IMG/VR virus record: IMGVR_UViG_3300036766_002289
Location: 326,040 to 390,039 of that record
Length of the DNA stretch: 64,000 nt
Strand: one strand, 5' to 3'
Under the pieces are notes generated by a model, which saw only the letters and a list, made by a program, of their open reading frames with translations, searched no databases and was not told where the DNA came from. Shown piece after piece: positions 7,436-51,287 of the stretch. Numbering within the stretch: position 1 is the stretch's first letter; the number at the start of each line of letters is the position of its first letter. Both the position numbers and the translations under genes were made by a program.

Positions 7436-7443
7436 GGAGATTA

Positions 7444-8043
7444 ATGCCAAGGGGAACTGAAAGAAGTGGTCGTTTAGCAGTATTGAGCAAGTGTAAGATC
7501 ATTACACCTTGCGGTACTATCTGTCTAAGAATTCTACCAGATATTTCTGACAGCAAAGGCGCAAACTATGCCCAAGAAAATGCCATAGGTAGAAGTAATC
7601 CTATGATTACTTTCGCTTATTCTGAGCCAAGAATGATTAATACAGAACTCCGCTTCATGACAACTACCACGGATGACATAAATGATAACTGGCGCTCAGT
7701 AAGTATAATAAAAAGTTTAGTTTATCCTGGCACAGCGACTGTTGATGGTGGGGCACCTTTTACGCCGCCACCTGTAGTAAAGTTTGTTTGCGGTGATTTA
7801 ATGGATGGTCCTAATGGACTTTGCCTGATACTTAAAAACTATAACTTAAGATGGCCTACTAATGTAGCATGGGATGAAGAAACTTATCTGCCATATCAGT
7901 TTTCAATAAGTTGCAGTTGGGAAGTTGTATATGCCTGTAAGAACTTGCCATCTAATAATTGTAGTACATGCGCTCCTGATAGTCAAGTAGATTGCGAACC
8001 AATTACTGGTGTTGGCATACCTTATGTTGCTGGAGGGGGGTAA
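7444..8043 (+). CDS. Baseplate tail-tube initiator (gp48/gp54, CIS-tube-like)
   Basis: ANY...IGRSNP...Y...R...PPPVVKFVCG pattern and position after the tape measure gene. Confidence 0.65.
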   Translation: MPRGTERSGRLAVLSKCKIITPCGTICLRILPDISDSKGANYAQENAIGRSNPMITFAYSEPRMINTELRFMTTTTDDINDNWRSVSIIKSLVYPGTATVDGGAPFTPPPVVKFVCGDLMDGPNGLCLILKNYNLRWPTNVAWDEETYLPYQFSISCSWEVVYACKNLPSNNCSTCAPDSQVDCEPITGVGIPYVAGGG

Positions 8044-8068
8044 TCCAAAACCGATTACGGGGTAAAAT

Positions 8069-8395
8069 ATGGCCAATGAAATGAGTTATACGAATTATGG
8101 AACTAAAAACTTAGTCACGGCAACTAGTCGTTATGCATATAGGTCCGTAGTACATTACGGTAGTTTAAATAAGGTCACATTTGCCATTTATAAAACACCT
8201 GCAATCGGCCCATCTTCAGATGATAAGTTTTATGAGATAACTAAAGAGGTAGAGTTTAGACCAGATTTAGTATCTTTCAGGTTCTATGGATTGCCAGATT
8301 TTTGGTGGCGTATTATGGAAGTAAATAAGATGAAGGATATCATGGAGTTCAGAGCGGGCAGAAATATAAGATTGCCTGGTGGTTCATTGATGTAA
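8069..8395 (+). CDS. gp53: Baseplate wedge LysM-like protein (gp53-like)
   Basis: RPDLVSFRFYG-PDFWWRIMEVN...GRNIRLP. Confidence 0.75.
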   Translation: MANEMSYTNYGTKNLVTATSRYAYRSVVHYGSLNKVTFAIYKTPAIGPSSDDKFYEITKEVEFRPDLVSFRFYGLPDFWWRIMEVNKMKDIMEFRAGRNIRLPGGSLM

Positions 8396-8403
8396 GGAGG
8401 AAT

Positions 8404-17140: not shown

Positions 17141-18184
17141 ATGAAAAAACATATAGCATTCCCACCGTTGACGCCTATTCAATTAGAAGTAATAAATGGA
17201 GCATTACTTGGGGATGGTTCATTGCACCATATTAAAAACACTAATGCAAATTGGAAATTTGTAACAAGTCAGAGTGCGTATGACAATAAAGGAATTGATA
17301 AATCAACTTATATGCAATATATCTTCGATGCATTGCAGCCATATAGCAGTAAATTAGCAAAATATGATAACAACAACACGATTTTAAACATAAATGGCAG
17401 GATGATAAATTTACATAAGGAAGATGACAAAAAATATCATTCGCTTACAACTCATTGTCATCCTGTCTGGACAAATATGGCAAAAGATTGGTACTTATGG
17501 AAAAATGGAAATCTAGTTTTAAAAGATAATAAAATAATTAAAATAGTTCCAGAAGAATTAAAATTGACGCCTCTTACATTGTGTATTTGGTTCATGGACG
17601 ATGGATCATTGGATAGCAAAAGAGGAAATGCTACTATACACACTGAAGGTTTTACTGTGAACGAATGCAATTTATTAATAGAAAAGTTAAAAGATGTTGG
17701 CATATTTGCCAAATTAAAATTCAAAAAAACATATCCTATAATTTTTATTGGGATTAAATCATATTACAAGTTATTGAGTTTAATTACGCCCCATGTGCAT
17801 TGGTCATGCTTCCAATATAAAATAGACAAATCATACTCTAAAAAACATCAACAAGGCGAACATCATTCACAAAGCAAACTGACGGAAATAAAAGTTAAAA
17901 AAATCATTGCATTATACAACGAAGGAATATATCAAAAAGATATTGCAAAACAATTCAATATATCACAAGCTACTATTTCGGAAATAGTAACTGGTAAAAA
18001 TTGGAGTCATTTAAATTTGGGTACTCCTGGAAGAAGGTTTTCTAAACTTTCTATGGACCAAAACCAATTAATCATAAAGGAAGTTAGAACAGGTGCAAAA
18101 CAAAAAGATATTGCTCAAAAATTCAATATAGATCAGTCAACTGTTTCTAAAATACTCAAAAATGTACAAATTATATCAATATAA
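17141..18184 (+). CDS. Free-standing LAGLIDADG homing endonuclease with C-terminal duplicated HTH
   Basis: GALLGDGSL and WFMDDGS motifs, two QKDIA.F(N).Q.T.S.I HTH repeats. Confidence 0.9.
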   Translation: MKKHIAFPPLTPIQLEVINGALLGDGSLHHIKNTNANWKFVTSQSAYDNKGIDKSTYMQYIFDALQPYSSKLAKYDNNNTILNINGRMINLHKEDDKKYHSLTTHCHPVWTNMAKDWYLWKNGNLVLKDNKIIKIVPEELKLTPLTLCIWFMDDGSLDSKRGNATIHTEGFTVNECNLLIEKLKDVGIFAKLKFKKTYPIIFIGIKSYYKLLSLITPHVHWSCFQYKIDKSYSKKHQQGEHHSQSKLTEIKVKKIIALYNEGIYQKDIAKQFNISQATISEIVTGKNWSHLNLGTPGRRFSKLSMDQNQLIIKEVRTGAKQKDIAQKFNIDQSTVSKILKNVQIISI

Positions 18185-23004: not shown

Positions 23005-26000
23005 ATGCCAAAGGCAATCCCAAAACCAGTATACCCAATTGCTTTAGATTCAAATTACACTCTATTTAGCACACATAATAGTGCGCAAACTCTCCTTGCC
23101 AAAGATTTAAGCATTACCAGTGATGTAATAGAAATCTATCCTAAGAGTGCTAATGATGCCGATGTTTGGGCCGAAAATGGTTTTGTCACGATTGAGAAAG
23201 AAATTATCTACTATGACAGTGTTACCAAAGATAAAAACAGCAAAATAACCCAATTAAAAGACTGCATAAGGGGAGTAGAAGGAGAAGTTAAAGCGTATGT
23301 CTCTGGCACTGCTATTTACGCAAACGTCGTTGCCCAATTACATAACCAATTAGTGGATGCAATCGTAGCCATAGAAAGCACAATTGGTGATATTTCTGAC
23401 ATGCTGAAGGTTGGAAATGACCTCAAAACACAGCAAAAAGTCAGAAAAAACCTTGTGCCTAAAAACATGGCAATGACTCAAATGGACACAGCCTTTACTG
23501 CGTCATTGCATCAGAATTTAACCGCGATGCTAGGTTGCGCTCCAGTTCCAGATGATGCTTGCCCAGATGTGGAATTTGAATTCAACATTCTAGGTTCTAC
23601 TGCTGAGTATTGTGTAAGAATTTTTGGAGATTATACAGCATTTGAAGTCGATTTTGGTGATGGTAATTCAACTACAACTCAATTGTCTGGCACCATAACA
23701 TTCAATGGAGGTAATCCCACAGTAACAGTCACAACCCCAACATGCACCCTTGTACAAATGCCGACAACTCCAGATGGTTGCGAAGCACCAGTATTGCCTA
23801 ATCCTTCAATTCCTTTTGTAATTGCGGTACCGTTTATACCAGATTGGCCTGGCTTTACTCCAAACAAGAATATATGTCCAGGTCCATTGTTCAGTTTGCC
23901 ACCAATTCAGTTTCCTAAATCTGAACTATGTTCTGTAATACCTAGTACATGCATCCCAAGTGTAATTATTTCTGTTATAGAATCCTGCAAGACCCCACAG
24001 ATCATCAGAATTGTCAGTCCTTGTAGAATCAGCATTATATCCTTAGTAGGATGTGAATTGCCTAGCATTATATCCCTAGTAGGGTGCTGTCCGCCTAGTA
24101 TAATCAGTGTAATTGCACCTAGTTTTAATTGCATAAGTTTCTGTCAGGTTCCAAGTTTTGAATGCATAAGTTTTTGCCAAGTCCCAAGCTTTGACTGCAT
24201 AAGTTTTTGTATGCCGCCGAGCATGGCCCCTGTTAGTTTTGCACCATTCCCAAGCATTGGTACTGTGTCTTTTGATGTTGCTATAAGCCTAAGCCCATTA
24301 TGCTTCTGCGAACCACCGAGTTTTGCACCTATTAGCTTTACTCCGTTCCCAAATATTAGCGCTGTATCGTTTGATGTTAATGTCGCATTGAGCTTAAGCC
24401 CAATATGCTTCTGTGAACCGCCAATTATTAGTTTTGCTCCATTCCCAAGCATAGGCGCTGTATCTTTTGATGTTGCTATAAGCTTAAGTCCATTATGCTT
24501 CTGCGAACCACCGAGTTTTGAGAAGATAAGTTTTGCTGAATTCCCGAGCGTTGGGAAAATATCATTCGATATCGCTGTTGAATTGAGTTTGAGTCCAATA
24601 TGTTTTTGTGACCCACCTAGTTTTGTGTGTATTGATTTTTGCACTCCACCAAGTTTTGGGATTGTTAGCTTTGCTCCGTTTCCAAGTATAGGGGCTGTAT
24701 CATTTGATGTTAATGTCGCACTGAGCCTAAGTCCAGTATGTTTCTGTGAACCACCTAGTTTTGCAGCTATTAGCTTTAATCCGTTCCCAAGCATAGGTGC
24801 GGTATCGTTTGATGTAATGCTTAGTTTGACTCCGTTGTGTTTCTGTGAACCACCTAGTTTTGCAGCTATTAGCTTTGCGCCGTTCCCAATCATAGGCCAA
24901 GTGTCATTTGATGTTGCTATAAGTCTAAGCCCATTATGTTTCTGTGAGCCACCAAGTTTTCAGTGCATTAGTTTTTGTCCACCACCTAATTTCGACCAAG
25001 TAAGTTTCGCACCTATAAGTTTTACTTCTTTCCCGAGCATTGGGACTGTATCGTTTGACGTTGCTATAAGTCTAAGCCCATTATGTTTCTGTGAGCCACC
25101 GAGTTTTTCTCAAATTAGTTTTGCACCATTCCCAAGTATAGGGATGGTGTCTTTTGACGTTCTCCTAAACGCAAGTTTGACTCCAATATGTTTCTGTGAG
25201 CCGCCAAGTTTCCAATGTATTAGTTTCTGCCATGTGCCTAGTTTTGATGTTGTTAGTTTTACTACACCACCAAGCTTCCACTGTGTAAGTTTCTGTGAAC
25301 CACCAAGCTTTAGCTTGATAAATTTTGCTACACCACCGAGCATTGTACCGATTAGCTTTGCACCATTCCCGAGCATTGGGACTGTATCCTTTGATGTTGC
25401 TTTGAACGCAAGTATAAGTCCTATATGTTTTTGCGAACCACCGAGTTTTTCACTTATTAGTTTTGCACCATTCCCAAGCTTGGGGGTAGTATCTTTCGAT
25501 GTGCTTTTAAATTTGAGCCTAAGTCCAATATGTTTCTGTGAAGTGCCAAGCTTTGCATGTATTAGTTTTTGTGAATTCCCAAGCATTGGCAAAGTATCTT
25601 TTGATGTTTTATTAAGTTTAAGTCCAGTTAGTTTTACTACGCCACCAAGCTTCCATTGTGTAAGTTTCTGTGAGCCACCAAGCTTCCATTGTGTAAGTTT
25701 CTGTGAGCCACCAAGCTTCCATTGTGTAAGTTTCTGTGAGCCACCAAGCTTTAGTTTAGTAAATTTTAATGCACCGCCAAGTTTTGCACTTGTTAGCTTT
25801 GCTCCATTTCCAGAAATTGGCAAGGTTTCATTCGACGTTATGTTGAATGCTAGTTTAAGTCCAGTATGTTTCTGTGAACCACCAAGCTTTGAATGCATAA
25901 GTTTCTGTCCTACTCCAAACTTTAACTTAGTGAGTTTTACTACTCCACCAAGTTTTCAATGTATAAGTTTTTGTGAGCCGCCAAGCTTTGGATGTGTGAG

Positions 26001-27339
26001 TTTTTGCGCACCACCAAGTTTTAGCTTAGTAGGATTTACTGCTCCACCAAGTATTGCACCTATTAGTTTTGCTCCGTTCCCAACAGTATCAACAGTGTCA
26101 TTTGACGTTATTGTAGACTTAAGTTTGAGTCCAATATGTTTCTGCGAACGACCGAGCTTTGATGCCATAAGCTTTGCCCCATTCCCAAGTATTGGTGCTG
26201 TATCTTTCGATGTTGCATTAAACTTAAGTTTAACTCCAATATGTTTTTGTGAGCCACCGAGCTTTAGTTGTGTAAGTTTCTGTACCCCAAGCTTTAACTT
26301 GGTGAGTTTCGCCACTTTGAGTTTTGATAAAGTATCATTTACAGTACCAAGCTTCGCTTGTGTAAGTTTTTGCAGCCCACCAAGCTTTGAGAAAATAAGT
26401 TTTACTGAATTCCCAAGTGTTGGTAAAGTATCGTTCGATATTGCAGTAGACTTAAGTTTAAGTTCTATATGTTTCTGTGACCCACCAGTTTTTCAGTGTG
26501 TCAGTTTCTGTCCACCACCATCATTTAATGATGTAAAGTTTGACGTTGCACTAAATTTAAGCTTAACTCCAGTATGTTTTTGTGAGCCACCGAGCTTTGA
26601 TTGCATAAGTTTTTGTGAGCCACCAGATTTTGATTGCGTAAGTTTTTGTCCTGTGCCGAGCTTCGATTGTATAAGTTTCTGCACACCACCAACTTTTGCA
26701 CCTATAAGTTTTACAACCCCAAGTTTTGGGCTTATTAGTTTTGATAAGCCACCGACTATAAGTGTTGTATGGGGAACACCGCCGCCATTATCGTGTACTG
26801 TGACTGTGGCGTGCCCATCGTCTTCAGGGTTTAGTAGTCCTAATCCATTTGGAAGTGCTGCACCTCAAACAGATTCTGATTTTAGTGAAGATTTTGACAT
26901 GAATGTACCTCTCACTTATAAAGACTTAGGTATACCAGAAGAAATTAGGCTTATAGGCCCTGACTTGCCTAGAGAAATATTTATTAGGGGTATAATTCCT
27001 GATGAAATTACAATCAAGGGAGATATACCAAGAAGCATTGAAGTTCATTCTGATATACCGCATAAGATCATGTTGGATGCAACGGATGTACCTAGAAAGA
27101 TCATGGTAGAGATGGCCCCTAATTTCCCATCCACATTAAGAATGGATGTTACGCACACTCTACAGGTCACAGGGATACCAAAATCTATAGAAATAATTGA
27201 AAATATTCCTAGAACTATTCAATTATTGATGCCAGAGAATCCAGTAGTTGAATTGAAATTCAATCAGGTGGATATAGAACTGAAACCAAGTGCGGACCTA
27301 GAAAAAATGTTTTCTAATTTAATGATCCCGCTTAAATAA
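23005..27339 (+). CDS. Giant Cys/Ser/Pro/Phe repeat protein, putative tail fibre
   Basis: Shared N-terminal anchor domain, one PKD-like DFGDG, about 950 aa of PPSFxC(I/V)SFC and PFPSIGxVSFDV..LSLSPxCFC repeats, IPxxI repeats at the C-terminus. SD AAGGAG. Confidence 0.65.
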   Translation: MPKAIPKPVYPIALDSNYTLFSTHNSAQTLLAKDLSITSDVIEIYPKSANDADVWAENGFVTIEKEIIYYDSVTKDKNSKITQLKDCIRGVEGEVKAYVSGTAIYANVVAQLHNQLVDAIVAIESTIGDISDMLKVGNDLKTQQKVRKNLVPKNMAMTQMDTAFTASLHQNLTAMLGCAPVPDDACPDVEFEFNILGSTAEYCVRIFGDYTAFEVDFGDGNSTTTQLSGTITFNGGNPTVTVTTPTCTLVQMPTTPDGCEAPVLPNPSIPFVIAVPFIPDWPGFTPNKNICPGPLFSLPPIQFPKSELCSVIPSTCIPSVIISVIESCKTPQIIRIVSPCRISIISLVGCELPSIISLVGCCPPSIISVIAPSFNCISFCQVPSFECISFCQVPSFDCISFCMPPSMAPVSFAPFPSIGTVSFDVAISLSPLCFCEPPSFAPISFTPFPNISAVSFDVNVALSLSPICFCEPPIISFAPFPSIGAVSFDVAISLSPLCFCEPPSFEKISFAEFPSVGKISFDIAVELSLSPICFCDPPSFVCIDFCTPPSFGIVSFAPFPSIGAVSFDVNVALSLSPVCFCEPPSFAAISFNPFPSIGAVSFDVMLSLTPLCFCEPPSFAAISFAPFPIIGQVSFDVAISLSPLCFCEPPSFQCISFCPPPNFDQVSFAPISFTSFPSIGTVSFDVAISLSPLCFCEPPSFSQISFAPFPSIGMVSFDVLLNASLTPICFCEPPSFQCISFCHVPSFDVVSFTTPPSFHCVSFCEPPSFSLINFATPPSIVPISFAPFPSIGTVSFDVALNASISPICFCEPPSFSLISFAPFPSLGVVSFDVLLNLSLSPICFCEVPSFACISFCEFPSIGKVSFDVLLSLSPVSFTTPPSFHCVSFCEPPSFHCVSFCEPPSFHCVSFCEPPSFSLVNFNAPPSFALVSFAPFPEIGKVSFDVMLNASLSPVCFCEPPSFECISFCPTPNFNLVSFTTPPSFQCISFCEPPSFGCVSFCAPPSFSLVGFTAPPSIAPISFAPFPTVSTVSFDVIVDLSLSPICFCERPSFDAISFAPFPSIGAVSFDVALNLSLTPICFCEPPSFSCVSFCTPSFNLVSFATLSFDKVSFTVPSFACVSFCSPPSFEKISFTEFPSVGKVSFDIAVDLSLSSICFCDPPVFQCVSFCPPPSFNDVKFDVALNLSLTPVCFCEPPSFDCISFCEPPDFDCVSFCPVPSFDCISFCTPPTFAPISFTTPSFGLISFDKPPTISVVWGTPPPLSCTVTVACPSSSGFSSPNPFGSAAPQTDSDFSEDFDMNVPLTYKDLGIPEEIRLIGPDLPREIFIRGIIPDEITIKGDIPRSIEVHSDIPHKIMLDATDVPRKIMVEMAPNFPSTLRMDVTHTLQVTGIPKSIEIIENIPRTIQLLMPENPVVELKFNQVDIELKPSADLEKMFSNLMIPLK
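23950..26790 (+). repeat. Degenerate coding tandem repeat array (11-aa and ~28-30-aa modules)
   Basis: Visible in protein and DNA. Boundaries approximate. Confidence 0.95.
25642..25740 (+). repeat. Three exact 33-nt tandem copies
   Basis: CCACCAAGCTTCCATTGTGTAAGTTTCTGTGAG x3 (PPSFHCVSFCE). Confidence 0.95.
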
Positions 27340-27341
27340 TT

Positions 27342-28172
27342 ATGAAAATAAAAAAGCATAGAAATAAAAACGATTACGCGCTTGCTAATAGTGGCGTTTG
27401 GGTAAGAGATTTTACTAAACCTTTAATCAGAAGTTTAGATATAAACAATCTAATTTCAATTCCAGACATGCAAATCATGTTAGAAAATGAAATTAAGAAT
27501 CATGATAAACTATATCAAAAAATAGAGACGGAAGATTTCAATCATGATAAAATTGTAATTATTGGAGATGGTTATAAACAAAAAGAAAAACAAAAACTAC
27601 TAGAAAGCTTGCCTGCCGATGTTCTGGTCATAGGTGTGAATAAGGCATTTGCCATGTGGGAATGTAATCACCGTTTAAATTACTATGTAGTTAACAACCC
27701 TTACGATGAATGTTTATTCTATTACCCGCCTTCTGTAAAATATTGGCCAAAATGTATTGCCTCCACGAGGACAAATCCAGACTTTTTAAGGAATTATCGT
27801 GGGACGACTTACTTATACAATCCAGTGCCTGATGAAATTTATAGTGGTATTAGGACTGAGAGTAATTATTTTGTGGACGATTATAGAAATCCAGTTTGTG
27901 CAGCACTATGCTTGGCTTATAAGTTTAAAGTTAAGAAACTCTTACTACTATCATTGCTGGACTTATATGAAGAAGAACGGCCAGGGACAGAACAGCATAA
28001 AGGTTTATGGATTTATCCACAACAAAAAACTGCGCAGTCTATAATTGATGCTAATTTATATTGGTTACAAAAAGCAAAAATTAGCGTAACTTACAATGAT
28101 AGCGGCCCAGATTATGAGTTTGCTTCATATATAACCGATAGCGAGGTCAAAGGATATTTCAATGTCAAATAA
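27342..28172 (+). CDS. Maf/DUF115/sialyltransferase-like glycosyltransferase (putative)
   Basis: IVIIGDG...VIGVN...AALCLAY.FKVKKLLLL.LLD follows the IIGNGPS...GVN...A..LA...G.K.I.L.G.D pattern. Confidence 0.55.
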   Translation: MKIKKHRNKNDYALANSGVWVRDFTKPLIRSLDINNLISIPDMQIMLENEIKNHDKLYQKIETEDFNHDKIVIIGDGYKQKEKQKLLESLPADVLVIGVNKAFAMWECNHRLNYYVVNNPYDECLFYYPPSVKYWPKCIASTRTNPDFLRNYRGTTYLYNPVPDEIYSGIRTESNYFVDDYRNPVCAALCLAYKFKVKKLLLLSLLDLYEEERPGTEQHKGLWIYPQQKTAQSIIDANLYWLQKAKISVTYNDSGPDYEFASYITDSEVKGYFNVK

Positions 28173-28485
28173 AGATGAGGGGAAGGAACCTAACTTTTCA
28201 TTGAACGATTTTAGGAAATGGGTTGGGAAGCAAAAGCGTGAATCCAGGTCTATAAAGTCAAAGTATAAGGGTTCCATTATTGAGTCCAGATTGAGTCTTA
28301 AAAGGCTTGTAACTAAAATGGACGTAGATCAAGGTGAACTCTTTGAAATGGCGAAGGATTTCAAGCGTAGAGGTGGTACGATTCTGGAATGTGACGGCGA
28401 TAATATCTTATTGGTAGAAGTACGGTCAGGCACTTTTAGAATCCCAAAATTGTTCGTTACTATTTTGTCTAGTTTTGGGGAGTGA
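28162..28485 (+). CDS. Hypothetical protein
   Basis: Overlapping ORF in the operon, basic. Confidence 0.65.
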   Translation: MSNKDEGKEPNFSLNDFRKWVGKQKRESRSIKSKYKGSIIESRLSLKRLVTKMDVDQGELFEMAKDFKRRGGTILECDGDNILLVEVRSGTFRIPKLFVTILSSFGE

Positions 28486-28609
28486 GCGATCCATCAACAC
28501 TTTAAAAAGAATCTCTATTACCATTTTACTATGATAATCCAGTGGCTGTAATTCTTCAAAAAAACTACAGAAACTTTCGTGTATAGACTTACGATTATCG
28601 GGGATATTC

Positions 28610-28918
28610 ATGGCAGTACCTTTATTTGAATATATATCTATAAAAAACAAGTATTGTATTGGTTATTTTGGCAGTGACAAATCTTTGATCTCTGACCTAT
28701 TAAAAGCAAGAAAGGTTATAGAAAAAGATTTCCCTGGTTTACAGGTATACATCGCTTGCAAAGACGAGATGCTTGATTTAGTCAAGGGAGTTAAAAACAT
28801 AATTTTGGAATCAGTAATGTCTAGTTTTACTGGCAAAGTTGCATATTTACGTATTTTGGAAGAAAAAGGTGACTTAATTAAGATTTTAGAAGAGTCAAAT
28901 ATTAAAGTAGATGCATAG
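28610..28918 (+). CDS. Hypothetical protein
   Basis: 102-aa ORF co-oriented with neighbours. Confidence 0.6.
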   Translation: MAVPLFEYISIKNKYCIGYFGSDKSLISDLLKARKVIEKDFPGLQVYIACKDEMLDLVKGVKNIILESVMSSFTGKVAYLRILEEKGDLIKILEESNIKVDA

Positions 28919-28964
28919 ATACACTCTAGACAGATAGACCCACATAACAAGGAGTCAGTTTAAA

Positions 28965-29570
28965 ATGAGTGTATTTAAAGTAAAATTACAGAACCCACCA
29001 TGCCAGGGTAACTTGGACCTTGATCCAACGGGTGCTAATTCACAAACAAACTTTTTGGGCAATCCGTTCGTTGTAAGTAAGCAGCGTACAATGTTTTGCA
29101 CAGGCCCAAATTTAATTTACCGTGAACTAAATGACGGAGACGTTTTCACAGATTGTAACTATTGGCTAAGATTTAACGTAGCAGACGACCCATGCCACGG
29201 TTTTATCGAAGTATTGTTCAATGACGGTAGCATCTTCTCAGATGTTGCTTCGGAAAATACTTTCCCAACTATTTACTCACCTTACAACGTCCTTACAACA
29301 GATACGTTCGCTACTAACTCCATCGACATTCTTGGTGGACTTGGCGGTGCAGCCATCTTCGTAGAAATGACGAACAATGGTACCATTGCAAATCAGGACA
29401 TTAAGGTACAGCTAAACGGTTCTTCAAGCGCAGTAATGACTCTAGCACATGGAGCCACCCAGATATTCAATGCTGGCGACCTCTCCATTACTAAGCTCGC
29501 CTTCTTAGGCGGTGTAGCAAATACTACTCTACAGATCATCTTGTCTGTAAACGTTGTATGCAACAGCTAA
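28965..29570 (+). CDS. Putative virion structural/decoration protein
   Basis: SD AAGGAG, Gly/Asn/Thr-rich beta composition, followed by a strong terminator as for highly expressed genes. Confidence 0.5.
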   Translation: MSVFKVKLQNPPCQGNLDLDPTGANSQTNFLGNPFVVSKQRTMFCTGPNLIYRELNDGDVFTDCNYWLRFNVADDPCHGFIEVLFNDGSIFSDVASENTFPTIYSPYNVLTTDTFATNSIDILGGLGGAAIFVEMTNNGTIANQDIKVQLNGSSSAVMTLAHGATQIFNAGDLSITKLAFLGGVANTTLQIILSVNVVCNS

Positions 29571-29589
29571 TATAAAACGCAATTACAGC

Positions 29590-29628
29590 AAACCCAAGCT
29601 ATGAAAAATAGCTTGGGTTTTATTTTTT
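29590..29628 (+). terminator. Rho-independent terminator
   Basis: AAACCCAAGCTAT-GAAAA-ATAGCTTGGGTTT then TATTTTTT. Confidence 0.85.
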
Positions 29629-29644
29629 GACACTCATTTAAATC

Positions 29645-30643
29645 ATGTTCAAAATAAAAAAGCCACCTAAAAACGATGGCAAAATGTCTATAAAAGAATT
29701 CTACGGGAAAAGAAATAAAGTCTTGTTGATTAGAAATGCAAGAGGTATAGGAGATATTCTCAACTGTAGAATGCTATTCAAAGCTTTCAAAGACATGATG
29801 CCAGAAGTATATCTGGTATTCGCGTGCTTCAAAGAGTATAAAAGCCTAGTACAGGATCATCCTTATATAGATGAAGTTGTTGATGTAAGAACTGTAGTAA
29901 AAGAAGACTACCTAATATCTTATGACATAAGCACTTGCTGCATATATCATGAGTCTCTGAAAGCAACCAAAAACGAGACACATAGAGCAGATATTTGGGC
30001 TGAACACTGTGGTTTAACTATTGAAGAACATGACATGTTTTTACCATATATAGACCCAGAAATACTCTCATGTGGACATATCAGAATACAACAACTTAAA
30101 AAAACTAGTTTATCAAGCAATAGGCATGGCCCTACTGTGCTGCTATGTACTAAGGCACATGACGTGCAAAGGTCGCTTACGCAAAGCCAAACTGTAGCTT
30201 TAGTAGAAATATTGAGACGAAAAGGTTTATTTGTATATTCGACTCACATCTCAGATTTACCATTACTCGAAAGCTTGGGAGTACCAGTTTTAAAAGATGC
30301 ATCTCTTGAAGAATGGATGAGTTACATTCATGCTGCGGACTATGTTGTTACGGTTGATACGGGGACTTTTCATTATGCGGGCGGAATTAAGAAACCATTA
30401 ATGGGTATTTTTACTCACGTAGACGGCAAATTAAGAGGTAAATATTATGATTTTGTCCTAGTACAAAAGCATAGAGATAATGGTAATTGGCCATGTGGTC
30501 CATGCTATACTTTCATCAATTGCACCAATCCAAGGTGTAAAGACCCCAACTCTCTACATGAGTTAAAACCCTGCTTGACTGAGATAACTGTGGAAGAAAT
30601 GGAAAAAGGAGTAGATAAAATGTTGCAAGTATGGCCTATATAA
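29645..30643 (+). CDS. GT9 (ADP-heptose:LPS heptosyltransferase-like) glycosyltransferase
   Basis: RGIGDIL...HPYIDEV...IHAADYVVTVDTGTFHYAGGIKKP..GIF. Confidence 0.9.
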   Translation: MFKIKKPPKNDGKMSIKEFYGKRNKVLLIRNARGIGDILNCRMLFKAFKDMMPEVYLVFACFKEYKSLVQDHPYIDEVVDVRTVVKEDYLISYDISTCCIYHESLKATKNETHRADIWAEHCGLTIEEHDMFLPYIDPEILSCGHIRIQQLKKTSLSSNRHGPTVLLCTKAHDVQRSLTQSQTVALVEILRRKGLFVYSTHISDLPLLESLGVPVLKDASLEEWMSYIHAADYVVTVDTGTFHYAGGIKKPLMGIFTHVDGKLRGKYYDFVLVQKHRDNGNWPCGPCYTFINCTNPRCKDPNSLHELKPCLTEITVEEMEKGVDKMLQVWPI

Positions 30644-30647
30644 GGAG

Positions 30648-30866
30648 ATGGGAAGTTTAATAACACCAACAAAGATAAATGTAATCACCAAAGAAGGTGA
30701 GTGTAAATTACATATTGTTATAGATTTAAACATAAATCTAAACACGACCAATGTTAGTATCAATTCAAGGCAAGCTGCTACTCCAGAGGTTCAGGAAGAA
30801 AAAACAACATGGGAAATTCCATCATTTAAATCTGTGGAAAAGGTGAAATTCGGAAATAAGGAGTAA
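30648..30866 (+). CDS. Small hypothetical protein
   Basis: 72-aa ORF between GT9 and the actin-like gene. Confidence 0.6.
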   Translation: MGSLITPTKINVITKEGECKLHIVIDLNINLNTTNVSINSRQAATPEVQEEKTTWEIPSFKSVEKVKFGNKE

Positions 30867-30868
30867 TT

Positions 30869-31885
30869 ATGCCAATCGGTGCAGATATAGGTACCTACAA
30901 TCTTGTAATGTGTACTAGAAATAAAGACGGCGGTTATATTTATGACCGAGAAGTAAACGCATTCCTTGAAATAGCACTAGAAGACCGCATGGTTCTAGAA
31001 ATGATGCGCACTTGCGACGACCCCGTACCCGTTATAGAAAGAGCAACCAAAGCTTACGCTCTTGGAGAAAAAGCGGTTCGTATGGCTTATACGTTATCAC
31101 AACTTGAACTTAAAAGACCTATGAAAGATGGTTGTGTCAATCCAAAAGAAAAAGATGCCTATGAAGTCATGAATATGATGTTACACAGTCTTCTTGAAGG
31201 TAATGTCAAAACCGATAAAGATGTTATTTACTATAGTGTTCCTGCAAATGCTTTGAATGAAGAAACAGACGCTGATTATCATTCTAAAATGTTGGCATCT
31301 ATGTTGGAAGCATATAAGTCAGATGAAGGATTTACAGTAACACCATTTCCTATTAATGAAGGATTAGCCCTTGTTTACGCAGAACTTAAATCTAACAACT
31401 ATACTGGTATCGGGATAAGTTTCGGTGCTGGAATGGTCAATTTATGCTTTGCAATGTTCGGTGTTCCTGTATTTCAGTTTGCACTAGTAAATTCAGGAGA
31501 CTGGATAGATAAAATGGCCGCGAAAGCAACTGGAGAAGGTATAACTTTTATTAACCAAGAAAAAACCAAGATGAATTTGTCAAAAGAACCAAAAGACTTG
31601 GTAGAACGTGCAATACAAACTCAATACAAAATAATGATAGAAAAAACAGTAAATGGAATCAAAAAGGGGTTAGGAGAAAGTGGCAAAAAGGCGCGCTCAG
31701 ACAAGCCTATTGACATAGTGATTGCAGGCGGCACATCAATTCCTATTGGATTCGATGTACTTTTCAGAGATGTAGTCCAGCAAGCAAACTTGCCTATTAG
31801 TGTTGGGTCTATAGTAAGGCCCAATGACCCGCTATACAGTGTGAGTCGTGGCTGTTTAATAGCAGCTGAAAACTCATTGAAATAA
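30869..31885 (+). CDS. Actin-fold ATPase (MreB/ParM/FtsA superfamily)
   Basis: Phosphate1 IGADIGT, connect1 INEGLA, phosphate2 ISFGAGMVN, adenosine IVIAGGTS, connect2 DPLYSVSRG. Confidence 0.85.
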   Translation: MPIGADIGTYNLVMCTRNKDGGYIYDREVNAFLEIALEDRMVLEMMRTCDDPVPVIERATKAYALGEKAVRMAYTLSQLELKRPMKDGCVNPKEKDAYEVMNMMLHSLLEGNVKTDKDVIYYSVPANALNEETDADYHSKMLASMLEAYKSDEGFTVTPFPINEGLALVYAELKSNNYTGIGISFGAGMVNLCFAMFGVPVFQFALVNSGDWIDKMAAKATGEGITFINQEKTKMNLSKEPKDLVERAIQTQYKIMIEKTVNGIKKGLGESGKKARSDKPIDIVIAGGTSIPIGFDVLFRDVVQQANLPISVGSIVRPNDPLYSVSRGCLIAAENSLK

Positions 31886-31912
31886 GTATTTTGTTAATTA
31901 GAAAGGACAAAA

Positions 31913-32665
31913 ATGTTTAATGATGGATTGGAACAGGAAGCCCCTGAAGTAGTTGTTTTATACGGACAAAGTGTTGAAGAAGTAAAAGAACTTCTTAAAG
32001 ATGATAGGTTGTATGCTAATAAGAAAAAAGATGATTTGAAATACATTAAATCCTTCATAAAAGAAGAAGAGACTAAGAAGGCTTATAAGCCTTGTGAATC
32101 CTTTGTGGAAGATATGTCTCCCTCAATTCGGCCAGATAAAACTCGATCAGATGATAAAATTGACCCAATTCGGCCAGATTACATAAGTGAATCTTTTATG
32201 CAAAAAGAGGTAAATCAAGCTAAGGAATGCATCGCCAAAGCGGCTAAGGCTAAATTAATGTTTGAGGACGCACCGAACGTAGACGAAAGCTTTGTGAACC
32301 TTGAGAGATTAAGAAAGACAGAGATTAAAAAGGATTTTACTCTTTTCAATACCTGGCGAAGATTAGCCAGCGTCGGAGAAACCTGCATTGACGAACATAA
32401 TTGTTTGCCAGATGATTTAAGCCCAACTCAGGAACTCATGGATTATATGATCCACAAAATCAATAAAGAGTTTCCTGATCTGAAGGCAGTTTGGGAAGAA
32501 GGCAGATGGAACCCATGCTTGTTAATTAATGGATGTATGACTCATATATCCATGTCTAAATTAACTTTTGCCTATAATGGTTTAAAAAACGTTGTAGACG
32601 ATTTAAACGCACAAAAGATAATCTGCGATATTATTTTGAAAAAGCTTGAAGTGTTATTCGTTTAA
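31913..32665 (+). CDS. Hypothetical protein
   Basis: SD AAAGGA. Internal 14-nt direct repeat (IRPD x2) at 32124 and 32166. Confidence 0.65.
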   Translation: MFNDGLEQEAPEVVVLYGQSVEEVKELLKDDRLYANKKKDDLKYIKSFIKEEETKKAYKPCESFVEDMSPSIRPDKTRSDDKIDPIRPDYISESFMQKEVNQAKECIAKAAKAKLMFEDAPNVDESFVNLERLRKTEIKKDFTLFNTWRRLASVGETCIDEHNCLPDDLSPTQELMDYMIHKINKEFPDLKAVWEEGRWNPCLLINGCMTHISMSKLTFAYNGLKNVVDDLNAQKIICDIILKKLEVLFV

Positions 32666-32679
32666 TATAAGTTATTTAA

Positions 32680-32709
32680 GCACTTAGGGTTAGCAATAGC
32701 CCTAAGTGC
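32680..32709. other. 13-bp hairpin with GCAA tetraloop
   Basis: GCACTTAGGGTTA-GCAA-TAGCCCTAAGTGC, no U-tract on the + strand. Confidence 0.7.
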
Positions 32710-32730
32710 GTATCGAATGAAAGGAATAGA

Positions 32731-32961
32731 ATGATAAAATATGTGAATGACCTTGGTGCCGCTGCTTACATTATGATGCATAAGTATAAAGTATTAGGCA
32801 AGAAAGGGAAGGCTGTTTGTTTTGAAATAGAAGATAAACAGGAAGAAATGGAAGAATTCGAAAAGCTTTACAGGGATTACCTGAATAGTGAGTTCCATCG
32901 TTTTGATTCATGCTTAATGTCTTTGAAGAAAATTAATGAAATAGCGCAGGATTACAACTAA
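32731..32961 (+). CDS. Small phage protein (DUF5659-like)
   Basis: YVNDLGAAAYIM pattern, SD AAAGGA. Confidence 0.5.
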   Translation: MIKYVNDLGAAAYIMMHKYKVLGKKGKAVCFEIEDKQEEMEEFEKLYRDYLNSEFHRFDSCLMSLKKINEIAQDYN

Positions 32962-32969
32962 ATAGTTGT

Positions 32970-34691
32970 ATGGATATCTGGACAAAGATAAAGCAAAACA
33001 TATACGCAGAGAAGTTGAATGAGGTAGACAACTTGTTTGACTCTTTGAAGTCTCGTTCCTCTTGGAGTGCCAACCTACAATCTTGGGCTTATAAGCAAAG
33101 AACTGACAAATACGAATCTCTAGGTTTAAGTCTATCAGAATATAATGAAGTAAAGACCAATTTCAAAGAACTTAATGAAGGCAGAGAAGAGTTCAAAAGA
33201 TACTACAAAATTCTATTAGACCAAAAAGAAGAAAATTTAAAACTAGAAGTAGTTGCAGAATTAGTGGAAGATAAAAAGGTTCCACTAGACATATTTACGG
33301 AATGGTACCTAGAAAATAAGCATTTGGACCCACAACAATTCCAGGAAACTCTTGGGGAATTCTGGGGTGATGTTTGGAAAGGTGCCAAACGTGGTGCAGC
33401 GGCAGGCGCTTTAGGTGGTGCAGCAGCTGGCACTTTAGGCGGCGCAGCTGGAACCTTTGCTGGTGCTGGTATAGGTGGCTTGGCGGGTGGTATAGGTGGC
33501 GGAATTTATGGCGCAGGAAAGCATATTTTTGGCTCAAAAGATAACTCAGACGGAAATTATGATGGGGGTGGTAGTTGGAGGGGTGCAGGTAAACATCTTT
33601 TAAATAAAGTTTGGGATTGGCGTAAGAATCATGTTGAATTTGAAAAGACTAAAAAAGAAGCATATGAAATACTTAAAAAGTTGAAATTACATGCGGACAA
33701 ATTTGAATTAGACCCTAACTTTGTTCAATTATTAGACACCATGCTTCAAAAACTTGGTGGAGTTAAAGCATATAAACTTAAGCAGCCTGAGCAACCTGCC
33801 CAACAAGTTCAACAGTCTACACAAGCTCAGCCTACTGCTCAGGAACCGCAAACCACGGGCAATAGTTTCCAAGTGTCAGCACCAACTGGCGGAACTCAAT
33901 CGGTAGCTTCGCCACCTACTAATATAATGCATCAAGGTAATACAGGAACCATTCCAGGCTCTCATATAGCAGATGTTGGCACAGGAGTAGGAATGCATGA
34001 TCTGCCTGGTGGTGGTAAGCCAGAAAGAAAAAAAAGAAATAAGAAACCTTTAGAGACCGAACCACAACCAACTGCTGTTGATATAGAGGAAGAAAAGCCA
34101 ATAAATTCCAAAGAAGACGTAATTGCTTACCTCCATAAGCCTGGTCTAGATGAGAAGGAACTAAATAATAGACTAGTTAAGCTTGGCTTAGCTTTAAACA
34201 TAATTGGCGATCCTGATGACTACAAAGATATAGATTTTGAATTATTAAGACACGGATTGATGCATGATGTTTCTAACATACCGAATGAAGAAAAAGAGCA
34301 TTATCGAGAAAAAGCGTTGGCCTATCAGAATTATTTGGCGAAGAGTAGTGCAGTTCCAGCTGAGCCTGAAAATAAACCTATACCAAATCAGCCTGCAAAA
34401 CAATATGTTGCGGAAGAAGACCCTGCAAGTATGCCTAAGCCAAAATTTAAAGAATATCTAAAAAGCAAAGGTATGTGGCAGGATGACATGCTTAGTCATA
34501 TAGGTGGAAGTGGAAGTGATAAGAGATTACAATTTATTGCTGACAACGGGGTTACGGAGTCCTTGGTAAACAAATACAAAGCTCTCCTTAAACAGGATGC
34601 TAGACCAGTATTTGTAGAACATAAAATTGGTTCTTTAACTTTCCAGGATAGAATCCATTTTTATAAGGAAGCATTAAGGGGTAGGCTTTAA
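32970..34691 (+). CDS. Glycine-zipper-containing protein, possible internal/ejected virion protein
   Basis: GAKRGAAAGALGGAAAGTLGGAAGTFAGAGIGGLAGGIGGG, TAAATA 5 nt before ATG. Confidence 0.5.
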   Translation: MDIWTKIKQNIYAEKLNEVDNLFDSLKSRSSWSANLQSWAYKQRTDKYESLGLSLSEYNEVKTNFKELNEGREEFKRYYKILLDQKEENLKLEVVAELVEDKKVPLDIFTEWYLENKHLDPQQFQETLGEFWGDVWKGAKRGAAAGALGGAAAGTLGGAAGTFAGAGIGGLAGGIGGGIYGAGKHIFGSKDNSDGNYDGGGSWRGAGKHLLNKVWDWRKNHVEFEKTKKEAYEILKKLKLHADKFELDPNFVQLLDTMLQKLGGVKAYKLKQPEQPAQQVQQSTQAQPTAQEPQTTGNSFQVSAPTGGTQSVASPPTNIMHQGNTGTIPGSHIADVGTGVGMHDLPGGGKPERKKRNKKPLETEPQPTAVDIEEEKPINSKEDVIAYLHKPGLDEKELNNRLVKLGLALNIIGDPDDYKDIDFELLRHGLMHDVSNIPNEEKEHYREKALAYQNYLAKSSAVPAEPENKPIPNQPAKQYVAEEDPASMPKPKFKEYLKSKGMWQDDMLSHIGGSGSDKRLQFIADNGVTESLVNKYKALLKQDARPVFVEHKIGSLTFQDRIHFYKEALRGRL

Positions 34692-35057
34692 CATAGCTTC
34701 TTTAGCTTGTTTGGCTATTTCAGCCAGCGCCGTTGGGTTAATGAAAGTTGCCCCAGGTGAAAGTGTTCTTTTAGCAGATGTAATCGGCTTTTCTTTACGA
34801 TATTCATCTATAATTTTTTTCTGCTCAGGATTATCTTCAAAAAGAACTTGTTCTTCTGAAATAGAAACTACGTATGGGAAAAGAATGTAATTTTTACATT
34901 TGGTAAGTGGATGGTGCATTAGAATACCGTGGTCATCAATTTCTTCTATGATGCCCGAGAAATAATCCAACATTTGTTCCACATTGTATCTAAAATTAAT
35001 CTGAATAGTGGTAATAGTGCAGACTTTGCCAACAAAATACTTCAAATATTCTTTCAT
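34674..35057 (-). CDS. Hypothetical protein, Sm/LSm-like fold possible
   Basis: FVGKVCTI...FSGIIEEIDDHGI...YI...VVSI. Confidence 0.45.
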   Translation of the reverse strand: MKEYLKYFVGKVCTITTIQINFRYNVEQMLDYFSGIIEEIDDHGILMHHPLTKCKNYILFPYVVSISEEQVLFEDNPEQKKIIDEYRKEKPITSAKRTLSPGATFINPTALAEIAKQAKEAMLKPTP

Positions 35058-35087
35058 ATTTTAATGATAGTAAGATAAATAATTATT

Positions 35088-35414
35088 ATGCCAGGAAAAG
35101 ATAATAAAGCCTATAAAGGATGGAGAGGAACAATTAAAGCTGCTTTGGATCATCATCCAGACAAATTTAGTAAAGAGGCTTGTAAGAAAAAAGGCACAGG
35201 CAAATTGTGTCCGTATGCAGTTTTCACAAAAAAGAAAGAAGAAGGCGACACACCCCATTACAAAGAACAGCCCCACACTACGAGTGGAACTCCACATAAG
35301 AAGAAAGAATTTGCCGAATACGTCTCACAAAGAGATGCAGAAATGTTAGAAGAAGGTAAAAAGAAGAAAAAAATGTCAGTTTCTTCCTTGAATGCAACCT
35401 TTGATATACCTTAA
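35088..35414 (+). CDS. Small Lys-rich basic protein
   Basis: Lys-rich 108 aa, TAAATA at 35076. Confidence 0.55.
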   Translation: MPGKDNKAYKGWRGTIKAALDHHPDKFSKEACKKKGTGKLCPYAVFTKKKEEGDTPHYKEQPHTTSGTPHKKKEFAEYVSQRDAEMLEEGKKKKKMSVSSLNATFDIP

Positions 35415-36412
35415 AGAAAAATATTAGTAAAATCATCAAACTGTTTTTCATTGGCAGTAATATAAGCCCTTATTATTTCTGATTTGAACATAACCAGCAT
35501 TTTATTCCAATCCTTAATTCCTTGTGGTGGACGAACATAGGTTATATCTGATACTTGATTTGCCATTAAGTTATCTGCCATTGCTTTTACACCCTGTAAA
35601 CCTGATGGGTCTTCATCTAATGCAAGACACACTTTATAGTCTCTAATTAGTTGTATCTGATTTTCAGAAAGATATTTGCCGCCACACGCCATACCATTAT
35701 AGCCACAAAAACATAGTGTTATTGCATCAAATTCACCTTCAGTAAGGTATATTTTAGAACTTTTAATTGGCCATTTTGGTGCAAAAATTACATCACCTTT
35801 ACCAACACCAATAGTCTTATCTGGACCAAGATATCTCAATCCTTTGTTTGCGAGACTTCTACCATTGAAATAAATGAGGTTCCCTTTTGGGTCATAATAA
35901 GGAATTATAATCCTATTTTTATAATCGCCTTCTGTGCAAATGTATAAACCAGTAGTAGACAATTTTCTTGTTGCTAAATATCTTTCTGCTTCTAGTCGCG
36001 TAGCATTCCCTTTTGGCAAAAAGTCTATCATAAAACTTCCTATTGGAAGTCTCATTTTACTTAGGTCTAAACCATCAGACTCCACTATAAATTCTTTTTC
36101 TTTGAAAAACTCTTCTAACTTCTGCTCTAAATCACCTATCAGAGTTTGACCAGATAGAATTTCTTTAGCTTCATCATGTGAGCAATTGTCCACTATCATT
36201 ACAAGACCAATAAGGGTTCCTTTCTTATCGGTCTTAAAGCAACGATAGCATCCATCCTGTCTATAATGTTTGCCACCTCTAGGTGAACACCAAAGATGTT
36301 GTCCTTCATCTTCCGTGAATACCGAATTGATCCTTACTTCATGACCTTTGACGATAACTTTGTCAAATTTGTCTTCACACCATCGCACAAAGCTTTCAAA
36401 ATCAATAGCCAT
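35411..36412 (-). CDS. DNA primase (DnaG/Toprim, gp61-like)
   Basis: RIIIPYYD..G.L.YFNGR, YLTEGEFDA, LALDED..G, KDWN. Confidence 0.9.
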   Translation of the reverse strand: MAIDFESFVRWCEDKFDKVIVKGHEVRINSVFTEDEGQHLWCSPRGGKHYRQDGCYRCFKTDKKGTLIGLVMIVDNCSHDEAKEILSGQTLIGDLEQKLEEFFKEKEFIVESDGLDLSKMRLPIGSFMIDFLPKGNATRLEAERYLATRKLSTTGLYICTEGDYKNRIIIPYYDPKGNLIYFNGRSLANKGLRYLGPDKTIGVGKGDVIFAPKWPIKSSKIYLTEGEFDAITLCFCGYNGMACGGKYLSENQIQLIRDYKVCLALDEDPSGLQGVKAMADNLMANQVSDITYVRPPQGIKDWNKMLVMFKSEIIRAYITANEKQFDDFTNIFL

Positions 36413-36413
36413 G

Positions 36414-37019
36414 CTATTTCCTAATAAAGAACTTCCAAACTTCTACCACATCTGGTCCAAATAGTCCAGAAGGAACATCTACATAAGTTCTTAATTCCAT
36501 GTAATTTGACCGACGATAGGACTTCATGTTTTCAATAGACTGAAAACTAATCAACCCGCCAACCTCTTCTACTTGGTCTTGGTATTCTTTGCCATTGTAG
36601 TAAAATCCTGATACTAGACCGTTATTAATGTTATTGCACTCAAACATTTTGTCGTACAATTTGTATTTGTCATCAGTGTGAAGACAACATTCTGTAGAGA
36701 ATAAACTCACAAAAGTATTTGGATAAAATCCATACTCATCTTTTATTTTATCACAGAGCAATTTTCCATTCAGAATTTTATAATCTGCTGTAAATGTGGC
36801 TACATCATCGTAGCCTTGGGGTTCAACATCCATACCAACATATTTAAATTTAACCCCATAATCAGAATATTCACACGTCCCACAGCCTAAATCAACCACG
36901 TACATGCGGCCTGACACAATGCTGCTAAATAGGTGAAACATCCTATTGTGGGCACTTCTTACAATAGGTTCTTTAAGATACTTCAAGTATTTTTCGAAAA
37001 ACTCTTGATTATAACTCAT
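36414..37019 (-). CDS. Class I SAM-dependent methyltransferase
   Basis: VVDLGCGT...YVGMD motif I/II. Confidence 0.75.
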   Translation of the reverse strand: MSYNQEFFEKYLKYLKEPIVRSAHNRMFHLFSSIVSGRMYVVDLGCGTCEYSDYGVKFKYVGMDVEPQGYDDVATFTADYKILNGKLLCDKIKDEYGFYPNTFVSLFSTECCLHTDDKYKLYDKMFECNNINNGLVSGFYYNGKEYQDQVEEVGGLISFQSIENMKSYRRSNYMELRTYVDVPSGLFGPDVVEVWKFFIRK

Positions 37020-51179: not shown

Positions 51180-51287
51180 TTTTAACGTCTTTTGCATAAC
51201 TACCTTATATAGTTAATAGGACCATTTAAATTTTTGTCCACAACTATATATATCAGAATAAGTAATATATCCTTAATGGGAGATGAT

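Follow-up and report, generated by a model that had tools for sequence, protein, structure and literature searches.

Locus and gene content

The DNA analysed here is a stretch of 64,000 nucleotides (the window) from IMG/VR virus record IMGVR_UViG_3300036766_002289, covering positions 326,040 to 390,039, that is, the final 64 kb of a virus record of 390,039 bp, which CheckV estimates to be 98% complete. The subject is a cassette of + strand genes within it, in which a gene encoding a 338-residue actin-fold protein is preceded by a short open reading frame encoding a 72-residue protein, referred to as s72, and followed by a second small gene, g76 (Table 1). An earlier annotation made from the letters alone (hereafter the sequence-only reading) had drawn attention to the first two of these genes, and its coordinates for both proved correct. 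Positions follow the numbering of the window unless marked as genome coordinates, which refer to the 390,039-bp record.

Table 1. Genes, motifs and putative signals in and around the actin cassette
Feature	Position	Strand	Basis or remark
g201, conserved neighbour	28965-29570	+	
Intrinsic-terminator-like hairpin	29590-29620	+	13-bp perfect stem, 5-nt loop, T-run; between g201 and GT9 gene
GT9-like glycosyltransferase, 332 aa	29645-30643	+	PF01075 25.7 bits and synteny
s72, 72-aa conserved partner protein	30648-30866	+	Synteny, alignments
s72 C-terminal tail, residues 55-72, predicted actin-binding peptide	30810-30863	+	Conservation, predicted interface
Shine-Dalgarno AAGGAG within last s72 codons	30858-30863	+	5 nt upstream of actin ATG
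Volactin-family actin homologue, 338 aa	30869-31885	+	Pfam PF25216
Phosphate-1 motif, residues 4-12, G-A-D-I-G-T-Y-N-L	30878-30904	+	
Connect-1, residues 160-168, including N163-E164	31346-31372	+	
Phosphate-2 loop, residues 180-192, G-I-G-I-S-F-G-A-G-M-V-N-L	31406-31444	+	Ser for Asp; intein hot-spot in homologues
S-G-D-W-I-D loop, residues 209-214	31493-31510	+	Third intein site in homologues
Adenosine motif, residues 283-292, I-V-I-A-G-G-T-S-I-P	31715-31744	+	
Connect-2, residues 318-332	31820-31864	+	
g250, 250-aa variable insert between actin and g76	31913-32665	+	No family match
Imperfect hairpin before g76	32677-32712	+	16-nt arms, 88% complementary, 4-nt loop, without T-run
g76, 76-aa DUF5659-like second conserved partner	32731-32961	+	Synteny, model
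g573, 573-aa protein	32970-34691	+	

Family assignment and nucleotide-site motifs of the actin

The 338-residue protein belongs to the Volactin family of Pfam (PF25216), which it matches at a score of 222.8 bits (cut-off 35; E 1e-65) over profile positions 1-321 of 321; in a search of the whole genome with the Volactin profile, the actin gene scored 222.4 bits. The sequence-only reading had proposed a phage-encoded actin-fold protein carrying all five actin motifs, and both parts of the proposal hold. Motif conservation was assessed in 125 diverse full-length representatives (28-62% identical to the query) as well as in 29 aligned homologues, and the five motifs were found to be conserved in both sets. 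Phosphate-1 is formed by D6-x-G8-T9, with Asp in 119 of the 125 representatives, and connect-1 by N163-E164, with Glu in 120; E164 likely corresponds to the catalytic Glu in MreB and ParM. Phosphate-2 reads S184-F-G186-A-G188...N191, where the first position is Ser in 121 representatives and Asp in one, with G186 kept in 124, G188 in 123 and N191 in 119. The adenosine motif contains G287-G288-T289 (G287 in 125/125), and connect-2 spans D320 to G328. In the S-G-D-W-I-D loop, G210, D211 and D214 are each found in at least 121 representatives (D211 in 121), and D6, E164, G186, G188, N191, D211, D214, G287 and G288 are all present in at least 119.

The phosphate-2 loop had been described as atypical, and the residues are indeed SFGAG in place of DxGxG, but the deviation is not peculiar to this gene. 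Judging from the alignments, Ser-for-Asp at phosphate-2 is a hallmark of the entire Volactin family rather than a quirk of a single gene, and how it affects nucleotide turnover makes a well-defined question for biochemistry. A Volactin signature derived here (D-x-G-T, N-E, S-x-G-x-G...N, G-D-W-x-D, G-G-T) is complete in the phage actin, and is also found in the cellular members L059 and P0185, which have a halophile-like acidic composition. A full-length alignment of the phage protein with one halophile-type cellular member gave 33% identity (E 1e-55). Searching the PDB by sequence with the actin gave no relative.

In several homologues the actin is interrupted by inteins of approximately 135-400 aa, which occur at three sites, all within phosphate-2 or the S-G-D-W loop. 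Insertion at S184|C185 was seen in six homologues (P0122, P0128, P0131, P0135, P0253 and P0095), at M189|C190 in two (P0141 and P0173), and just before G-D-W in four (P0132, P0194, P0211 and P0254), and the matches to the actin were split in loci L049, L050 and L054. All intein sites fall in the two most conserved loops, a placement typical of the strongest functional constraint.

Structural comparison with filament-forming actins

An AlphaFold2 model of the actin, based on 29 homologues, reached a predicted local distance difference test score (pLDDT) of 89.6 and a predicted template modelling score (pTM) of 0.88. The modelled fold is certainly that of an actin, closest to MamK and MreB: MamK was the closest structural match and MreB was among the closest folds, with ParM well below both of them (Foldseek rank 27, template modelling (TM) score 0.54). 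The sole NCBIfam match was likewise to MamK (NF040964), at 40.8 bits and far below the cut-off of 400. The phage actin shares 16-21% identity with MamK, MreB and BeeR and differs from them by the Ser at phosphate-2; moreover, it lacks the magnetosome or elongasome context of MamK and MreB. Among the viral structures in BFVD, only distant actin-fold or Hsp70 proteins of 9-17% identity were found, and no named Volactin-type viral protein.

An actin fold is by itself no proof of polymerisation, and the protein might instead be a non-polymerising actin-fold ATPase, with a chaperone-like or assembly function resembling that of the Hsp70 nucleotide-binding domain or EutJ, for which s72 would act as a co-factor or substrate-mimicking peptide. 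An assembly ATPase was also the alternative that the sequence-only reading had offered. This appears distinctly unlikely. The top structural matches are filament formers throughout and lie 3-5 Z units above Hsp70, and the size and four-subdomain layout of the protein fit MamK and MreB across 294 of the 338 residues. The protein comprises the actin-fold domain only, without a C-terminal substrate-binding domain, and gave no HSP70 match in Pfam. In addition, the family's one characterised protein assembles into dynamic filaments (PMC10869688). The phage actin would most likely bind ATP and polymerise into filaments in the infected cell.

A conserved module of s72, actin and g76

Gene order was compared across 49 related viral loci. 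The 72-residue open reading frame to which the sequence-only reading had pointed immediately precedes the actin gene in 45 of them and is a conserved partner. Its stop codon and the actin ATG are 2 nt apart, the gap in most loci amounts to 0-25 nt, and the canonical ribosome-binding site of the actin gene is embedded in s72 (Table 1); the two genes are probably translationally coupled, as far as can be judged from this arrangement. In the s72 protein, a conserved beta-rich module at the N-terminus (approximately residues 1-33) is joined by a variable, acidic linker to a C-terminal tail that is again conserved, and in which W55, I57, P58, F60, K65, F68, G69 and K70 are retained (W-x-I-P-x-F...K-x-K-F-G). 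It has no match in Pfam, PHROG or NCBIfam.

A second conserved partner, which the sequence-only reading had missed, is the DUF5659-like g76, found downstream of the actin gene in 46 of the 49 loci. It is very strongly conserved and in many loci starts 23-44 nt past the actin stop codon. In 14 of 33 distinct versions g76 is tandemly duplicated to approximately 150 aa (L002, L011, L012, L014, L015, L019, L022, L024, L025, L030, L035, L036, L043 and L044), and in the rest it is a single domain of approximately 72 aa; the existence of tandem two-domain versions suggests that g76 works as a dimer. Its AlphaFold2 model (pLDDT 92.6) superimposes on that of a cluster consisting to 94% of DUF5659 (PF18903) proteins, with TM scores of 0.71/0.75 and a root-mean-square deviation of 1.7 over 65 residues, and the DUF5659 feature score was 0.87. 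No Pfam match was obtained for g76 at E <= 0.1, and no PDB match for its fold at E <= 0.001. Elsewhere in the 390-kb genome there is no g76 paralogue.

The order of small open reading frame, actin and g76 homologue is kept even in locus L061, where the actin is only 45% identical. On the same phage-like contig, a ribosomal protein S21 homologue (7583-7894) is encoded two genes downstream of the module.

Other genes in the neighbourhood are conserved to differing extents: g201 was found in 45 of the 49 loci, g250 in 8 and g573 in 8. The actin, s72, g76 and five neighbours were all without a match in PHROGs, and g250 has no family match in Pfam, PHROG or NCBIfam. A paralogue of g201, 38.5% identical, is located at genome positions 252,134-252,640 (-). 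The g573 protein contains a long Gly/Ala-rich segment resembling a glycine zipper (residues ~138-190) and a Q/P-rich linker; its matches are all weak and fall on Gly-rich stretches of tail-lysin families in PHROG.

Predicted contact between s72 and the actin

The sequence-only reading had cast the small protein as an adaptor and called for a structure prediction of the pair. Prediction of the s72-actin complex yielded an ipSAE of 0.70, compared to 0.00 for the best of three controls. In calibration, 58 of 80 solved complexes reached this mark, as against 2 of 110 mismatched pairs; these counts hold only roughly, own alignments having been used here. Three runs agreed in at least 82% of contacts, with a partner pLDDT of at least 51. 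On the s72 side, the predicted interface coincides exactly with the conserved tail (residues 55 and 57-72), and on the actin side it takes in residues 24-28, 54-56, 65-67, 98-110, 137-152 and 323. The prediction supports, but does not demonstrate, binding of the s72 tail to the actin. Clade-specific conservation of the interface gave an apparent signal (p = 0.005), which was lost within positions that are variable in the wider family (p = 0.33).

The tail motif of s72 occurs once in the 390-kb genome, in s72 itself. Comparison across the family lends better support to binding. In distant relatives, related tails are attached to other N-terminal parts: the upstream partner in L064 carries K-P-A-K-F-G-I-D-D behind an N-terminal transmembrane helix (Kyte-Doolittle 3.2), and that in L066 carries E-V-R-F-G-I-E-D-K behind an s72-like module. 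A common [K/R]-F-G tail on differing heads is what would be expected of a modular adaptor.

Glycosyltransferase neighbours and a possible role at the envelope

The actin had also been described as lying downstream of a GT9 gene. A GT9-like gene is indeed present (Table 1), but its match to Glyco_transf_9 (PF01075; cut-off 22) extends only over residues 212-260, and it is a variable neighbour, found directly upstream of the small open reading frame in 25 of the 49 loci. Roughly half of the loci lack the GT9 gene, which is therefore placed outside the core module. Genes for glycosyltransferases (GT9, GT1 and GT2) and sulfotransferases recur at distances of a few kb from Volactin genes, in this clade as well as among distant phage-like relatives (L061, L063, L064, L066 and L068).

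These neighbours raise the possibility that the actin remodels the envelope or cell shape: it would scaffold or misdirect envelope-synthesis enzymes, including phage glycosyltransferases, or would alter the shape or size of the host during infection, and s72-type proteins would tether the actin to the membrane. Such a role is rather unlikely, though several observations are compatible with it. Besides the adjacency of glycosyl- and sulfotransferases, the transmembrane helix of the L064 partner and the similarity of the fold to MreB would fit, and the founding volactin affects the cell shape of H. volcanii (PMC10869688). The s72 protein of the present phage, however, is devoid of a hydrophobic segment (maximum Kyte-Doolittle 0.6), and MreB_Mbl (PF06723) is matched by the actin with only 21.2 bits, below the cut-off of 27 and over residues 57-128 only. 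Gram-negative MreB binds the membrane through an N-terminal amphipathic helix, which the phage actin lacks, as it opens with M-P-I-G-A-D-I-G-T and leads straight into phosphate-1. Finally, huge phages carry many glycosyltransferases, and adjacency to the actin may be coincidence.

Transcription of the cassette

The hairpin at 29590-29620 resembles a strong intrinsic terminator and marks the upstream boundary of the actin-module transcription unit. This unit probably comprises the genes for GT9, s72, the actin, g250, g76 and g573, and ends convergently with a minus-strand gene at 34674-35057. The T4 late motif TATAAATA is not enriched genome-wide (11 copies vs 7.2 expected) and is absent between 19564 and 38020. 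A sigma-70 scan performed no better than shuffles (35 vs 32.3), and the single 10/12 match after the terminator would have its -10 element inside the GT9 open reading frame.

De novo motif search revealed an abundant upstream motif with the core TAGTTGTAC and 107 copies genome-wide, the fuller form of which is [AT]TA[GC]C[TC]TAGTTGTACC(A), sometimes extended by ATTAGGGTGTGATT. The + strand holds approximately 100 of the 107 copies, and these usually lie 19-50 nt ahead of an ATG, mostly before small genes (50-150 aa) at genome positions 244,000-317,000; the distribution looks like a dense early-gene promoter array. A stray copy is found at 13649 (-). The genome block at 300-315 kb has a GC content of 48.6%, vs about 38%. 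A rarer motif, (T)ACTATATA, is present in 18 copies genome-wide, 13-45 nt before several start codons, including those of some structural genes and of a divergent pair near 51200; copies in the window are located at 51213 (-), 51243 (+) and 3699 (-). Elements resembling TATAAATA/CATATATA precede the gene for a 1058-aa protein (4259) and TerL (42200), and these as well as (T)ACTATATA may be late-type promoters.

Neither of the two recurrent genome motifs (the TAGTTGTAC core and the ACTATATA type) precedes the actin cassette. The assignment of the cassette to a late operon by the sequence-only reading is therefore unsupported, since the terminator separates it from the upstream structural-side genes and no late-type or recurrent motif lies ahead of it.

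The phage genome and the possibility of a partition system

Among the products of the 390-kb genome are a major capsid protein of the T4 type (Gp23, E 3.8e-88), a T4-type terminase, a DnaG-type primase and proteins of the baseplate. In terms of gene content, the phage is a huge T4-like myovirus of lytic architecture. Its nearest cultured capsid relatives, from Microcystis phage Mel-JY01 and Xanthomonas phages XacN1 and Xoo-sp13, are 33-35% identical, and the capsid protein of the uncultured 595-kb phage LR756511 is 87% identical. Neither a tyrosine integrase nor ParB was found in the genome, nor a tubulin (no match to PF00091), and the record has no host-like flank, no terminal repeat and a uniform composition throughout. 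The "provirus" label given by IMG/VR is probably a classifier artefact, because there is no integrase and no host-like flank, the GC content is uniform and the modules are those of a T4-like lytic phage.

The label, together with the pairing of an actin with a small adjacent partner predicted to bind it by a C-terminal tail, which resembles ParM/ParR and AlpC/AlpA (PMC4446434, PMC5539076), could be taken to indicate ParMRC-type partition of the phage genome as a low-copy extrachromosomal element, with s72 or g76 as the centromere-binding adaptor. We regard this as very improbable. In addition to the missing integrase and ParB, the uniform record lacking flanks and terminal repeats, and the T4-like lytic character of the virion and replication modules, no iterons or centromere-like repeats were found within approximately 3 kb of the cassette (27000-36500). 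The Pfam scan of the actin gave no ParM/StbA match, and s72 has no recognisable DNA-binding fold.

Some further features of the structural genes were noted. The Gp20-type portal gene (46357-48888, +) carries an intein (Intein_splicing, residues 107-322), and a free-standing LAGLIDADG endonuclease with helix-turn-helix domains is encoded among the baseplate and tail genes (17141-18184, +). The tail/baseplate block closes, after two PKD-domain proteins, with a gene at 23005-27339 (+) for a 1,444-aa protein made up mostly of dozens of short Cys/Pro-rich repeats (C-F-C-E-P-P-S-F ... S-F-D-V); the repeats are of an unusual type, and the protein probably serves as a fibre or in receptor binding.

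Proposed function of the module

The reading we favour, to which we would give an even chance of being right, is that the Volactin actin forms the core of a three-gene, adaptor-linked filament system that organises phage structures in the host. The actin surface on which the tail of s72 is predicted in silico to dock comprises strand 24-28, residues 54-67 and two helices (95-110 and 135-152); the separate N-terminal module of s72 would engage cargo or membrane. With the tail on the actin and the head on cargo or membrane, the system would therefore constitute an adaptor-linked filament machine, which could organise or position a phage structure such as the replication or assembly site, DNA or particles, comparable in role to PhuZ tubulin in chimalliviruses and to AlpC/AlpA in prophage CGP3. 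The sequence-only reading had inferred an actin-based counterpart that would position phage DNA or capsids or reshape the host cell. What the data show is the family membership, the fold, the complete signature of the nucleotide site, the conserved order of the genes and their genomic setting.

A broader version of this proposal is more tentative and, at present, rather doubtful: tubulin-less huge T4-like phages (300-670 kb) might in general build an actin cytoskeleton that is served by interchangeable [K/R]-F-G adaptors and has a DUF5659 protein as its third component. If so, the adaptor heads, whether soluble beta-modules or transmembrane helices, would couple filaments to cargo or membrane, the system would represent an actin-based counterpart of the PhuZ spindle, and a first function would be assigned to DUF5659 and to the s72 family.

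Distribution of phage and cellular Volactin proteins

A word search returned 1,413 homologue clusters at 90% identity, and the 120 of these that were listed all carry PF25216, many of them on contigs of 280-673 kb; most homologues come from phage contigs. Exhaustive search gave 876 representatives (50% identity) at E <= 1e-3, and 234 at E <= 1e-30. Among 50,697 deposited phage records, a homologue was present in only two, both from uncultured huge phages, and in no cultured phage. The nearest ESM Atlas clusters are annotated as "Volactin domain-containing" and are 92-100% viral. The data suggest that the module is shared by a large clade of huge T4-like phages, all of them uncultured. No description of the Volactin family in phages was found in the searchable literature; a preprint on Jug phages (genomes of 360-402 kb) names ParMRC only in its reference list and offers no usable link.

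A scan of GTDB genomes gave seven matches, all on contigs of metagenome-assembled genomes from unrelated phyla, one of them 546 kb long. These are read as mis-binned phage contigs, and no inference on the host is therefore drawn from them. A genuine cellular context was seen in L059 (NCBI metagenome-assembled genome GCA_964580675.1), where two tandem Volactin genes (6001-7146 and 7217-8770) lie beside gatA/gatB and a PAS-GGDEF-EAL gene in an acidic, halophile-like proteome. The two paralogues have long acidic N-terminal extensions, the second opening with a zinc-ribbon-like C-x-C...C-x-x-C segment, and are preceded by a 334-aa acidic protein.

Comparison with known cytoskeletal systems

To our knowledge, phage-encoded cytoskeletons are known from two cases, the tubulin PhuZ and the ParM-like AlpC of one temperate prophage. 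The present data point to phage Volactin actins as a third case, which is much more widespread and represented in many metagenomes. The only characterised relative is the volactin VolA (HVO_2015) of Haloferax volcanii, which forms dynamic filaments in vivo and has a role in cell-shape transition (PMC10869688). The phage actin falls in the identical Pfam family over its full length and far above the cut-off, which the PF25216 search passed in one control genome, presumably that of H. volcanii. In contrast to the archaeal protein, however, it is encoded by a huge T4-like phage, the two small partners of the phage module are missing from cellular loci (L059), and the rod-to-disk role has no obvious phage counterpart.

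A precedent for a phage actin acting together with an adaptor is provided by AlpC/AlpA of the Corynebacterium glutamicum prophage CGP3, in which an actin-like protein working with a small adaptor is required for efficient replication and transport of viral DNA (PMC4446434, PMC5539076). CGP3 is an integrated temperate prophage, whereas the present genome has no integrase and a lytic T4-like architecture. Furthermore, no alpS-like DNA sites were found at 27000-36500, the actin is of the Volactin family, and the partner proteins match no known family. A similar arrangement is found in ParM/ParR/parC of plasmid R1, where ParR is a small partner that binds the actin ParM through its C-terminal tail. 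An actin-binding C-terminal tail is likewise predicted for s72, with a docking surface made up of subdomain IA/IB helices and a strand edge; centromere repeats are lacking here.

The functional analogy proposed here, albeit an inferred one, is with the PhuZ tubulin spindle, the cytoskeletal polymer by which nucleus-forming jumbo phages organise the cell interior (PMC8314001, PMC7950403). In both cases a very large phage encodes a cytoskeletal protein, but it is a tubulin there and an actin fold here, in a tubulin-less genome of T4-like lineage that is not a chimallivirus. If the actin polymerises and s72 is its adaptor, lytic huge phages would have recruited actin repeatedly to organise infection. 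The module would then amount to a small actin-adaptor system of three proteins, suited to expression in a standard host, and would connect archaeal volactin, which is poorly understood, with an extensive reservoir of viral family members.

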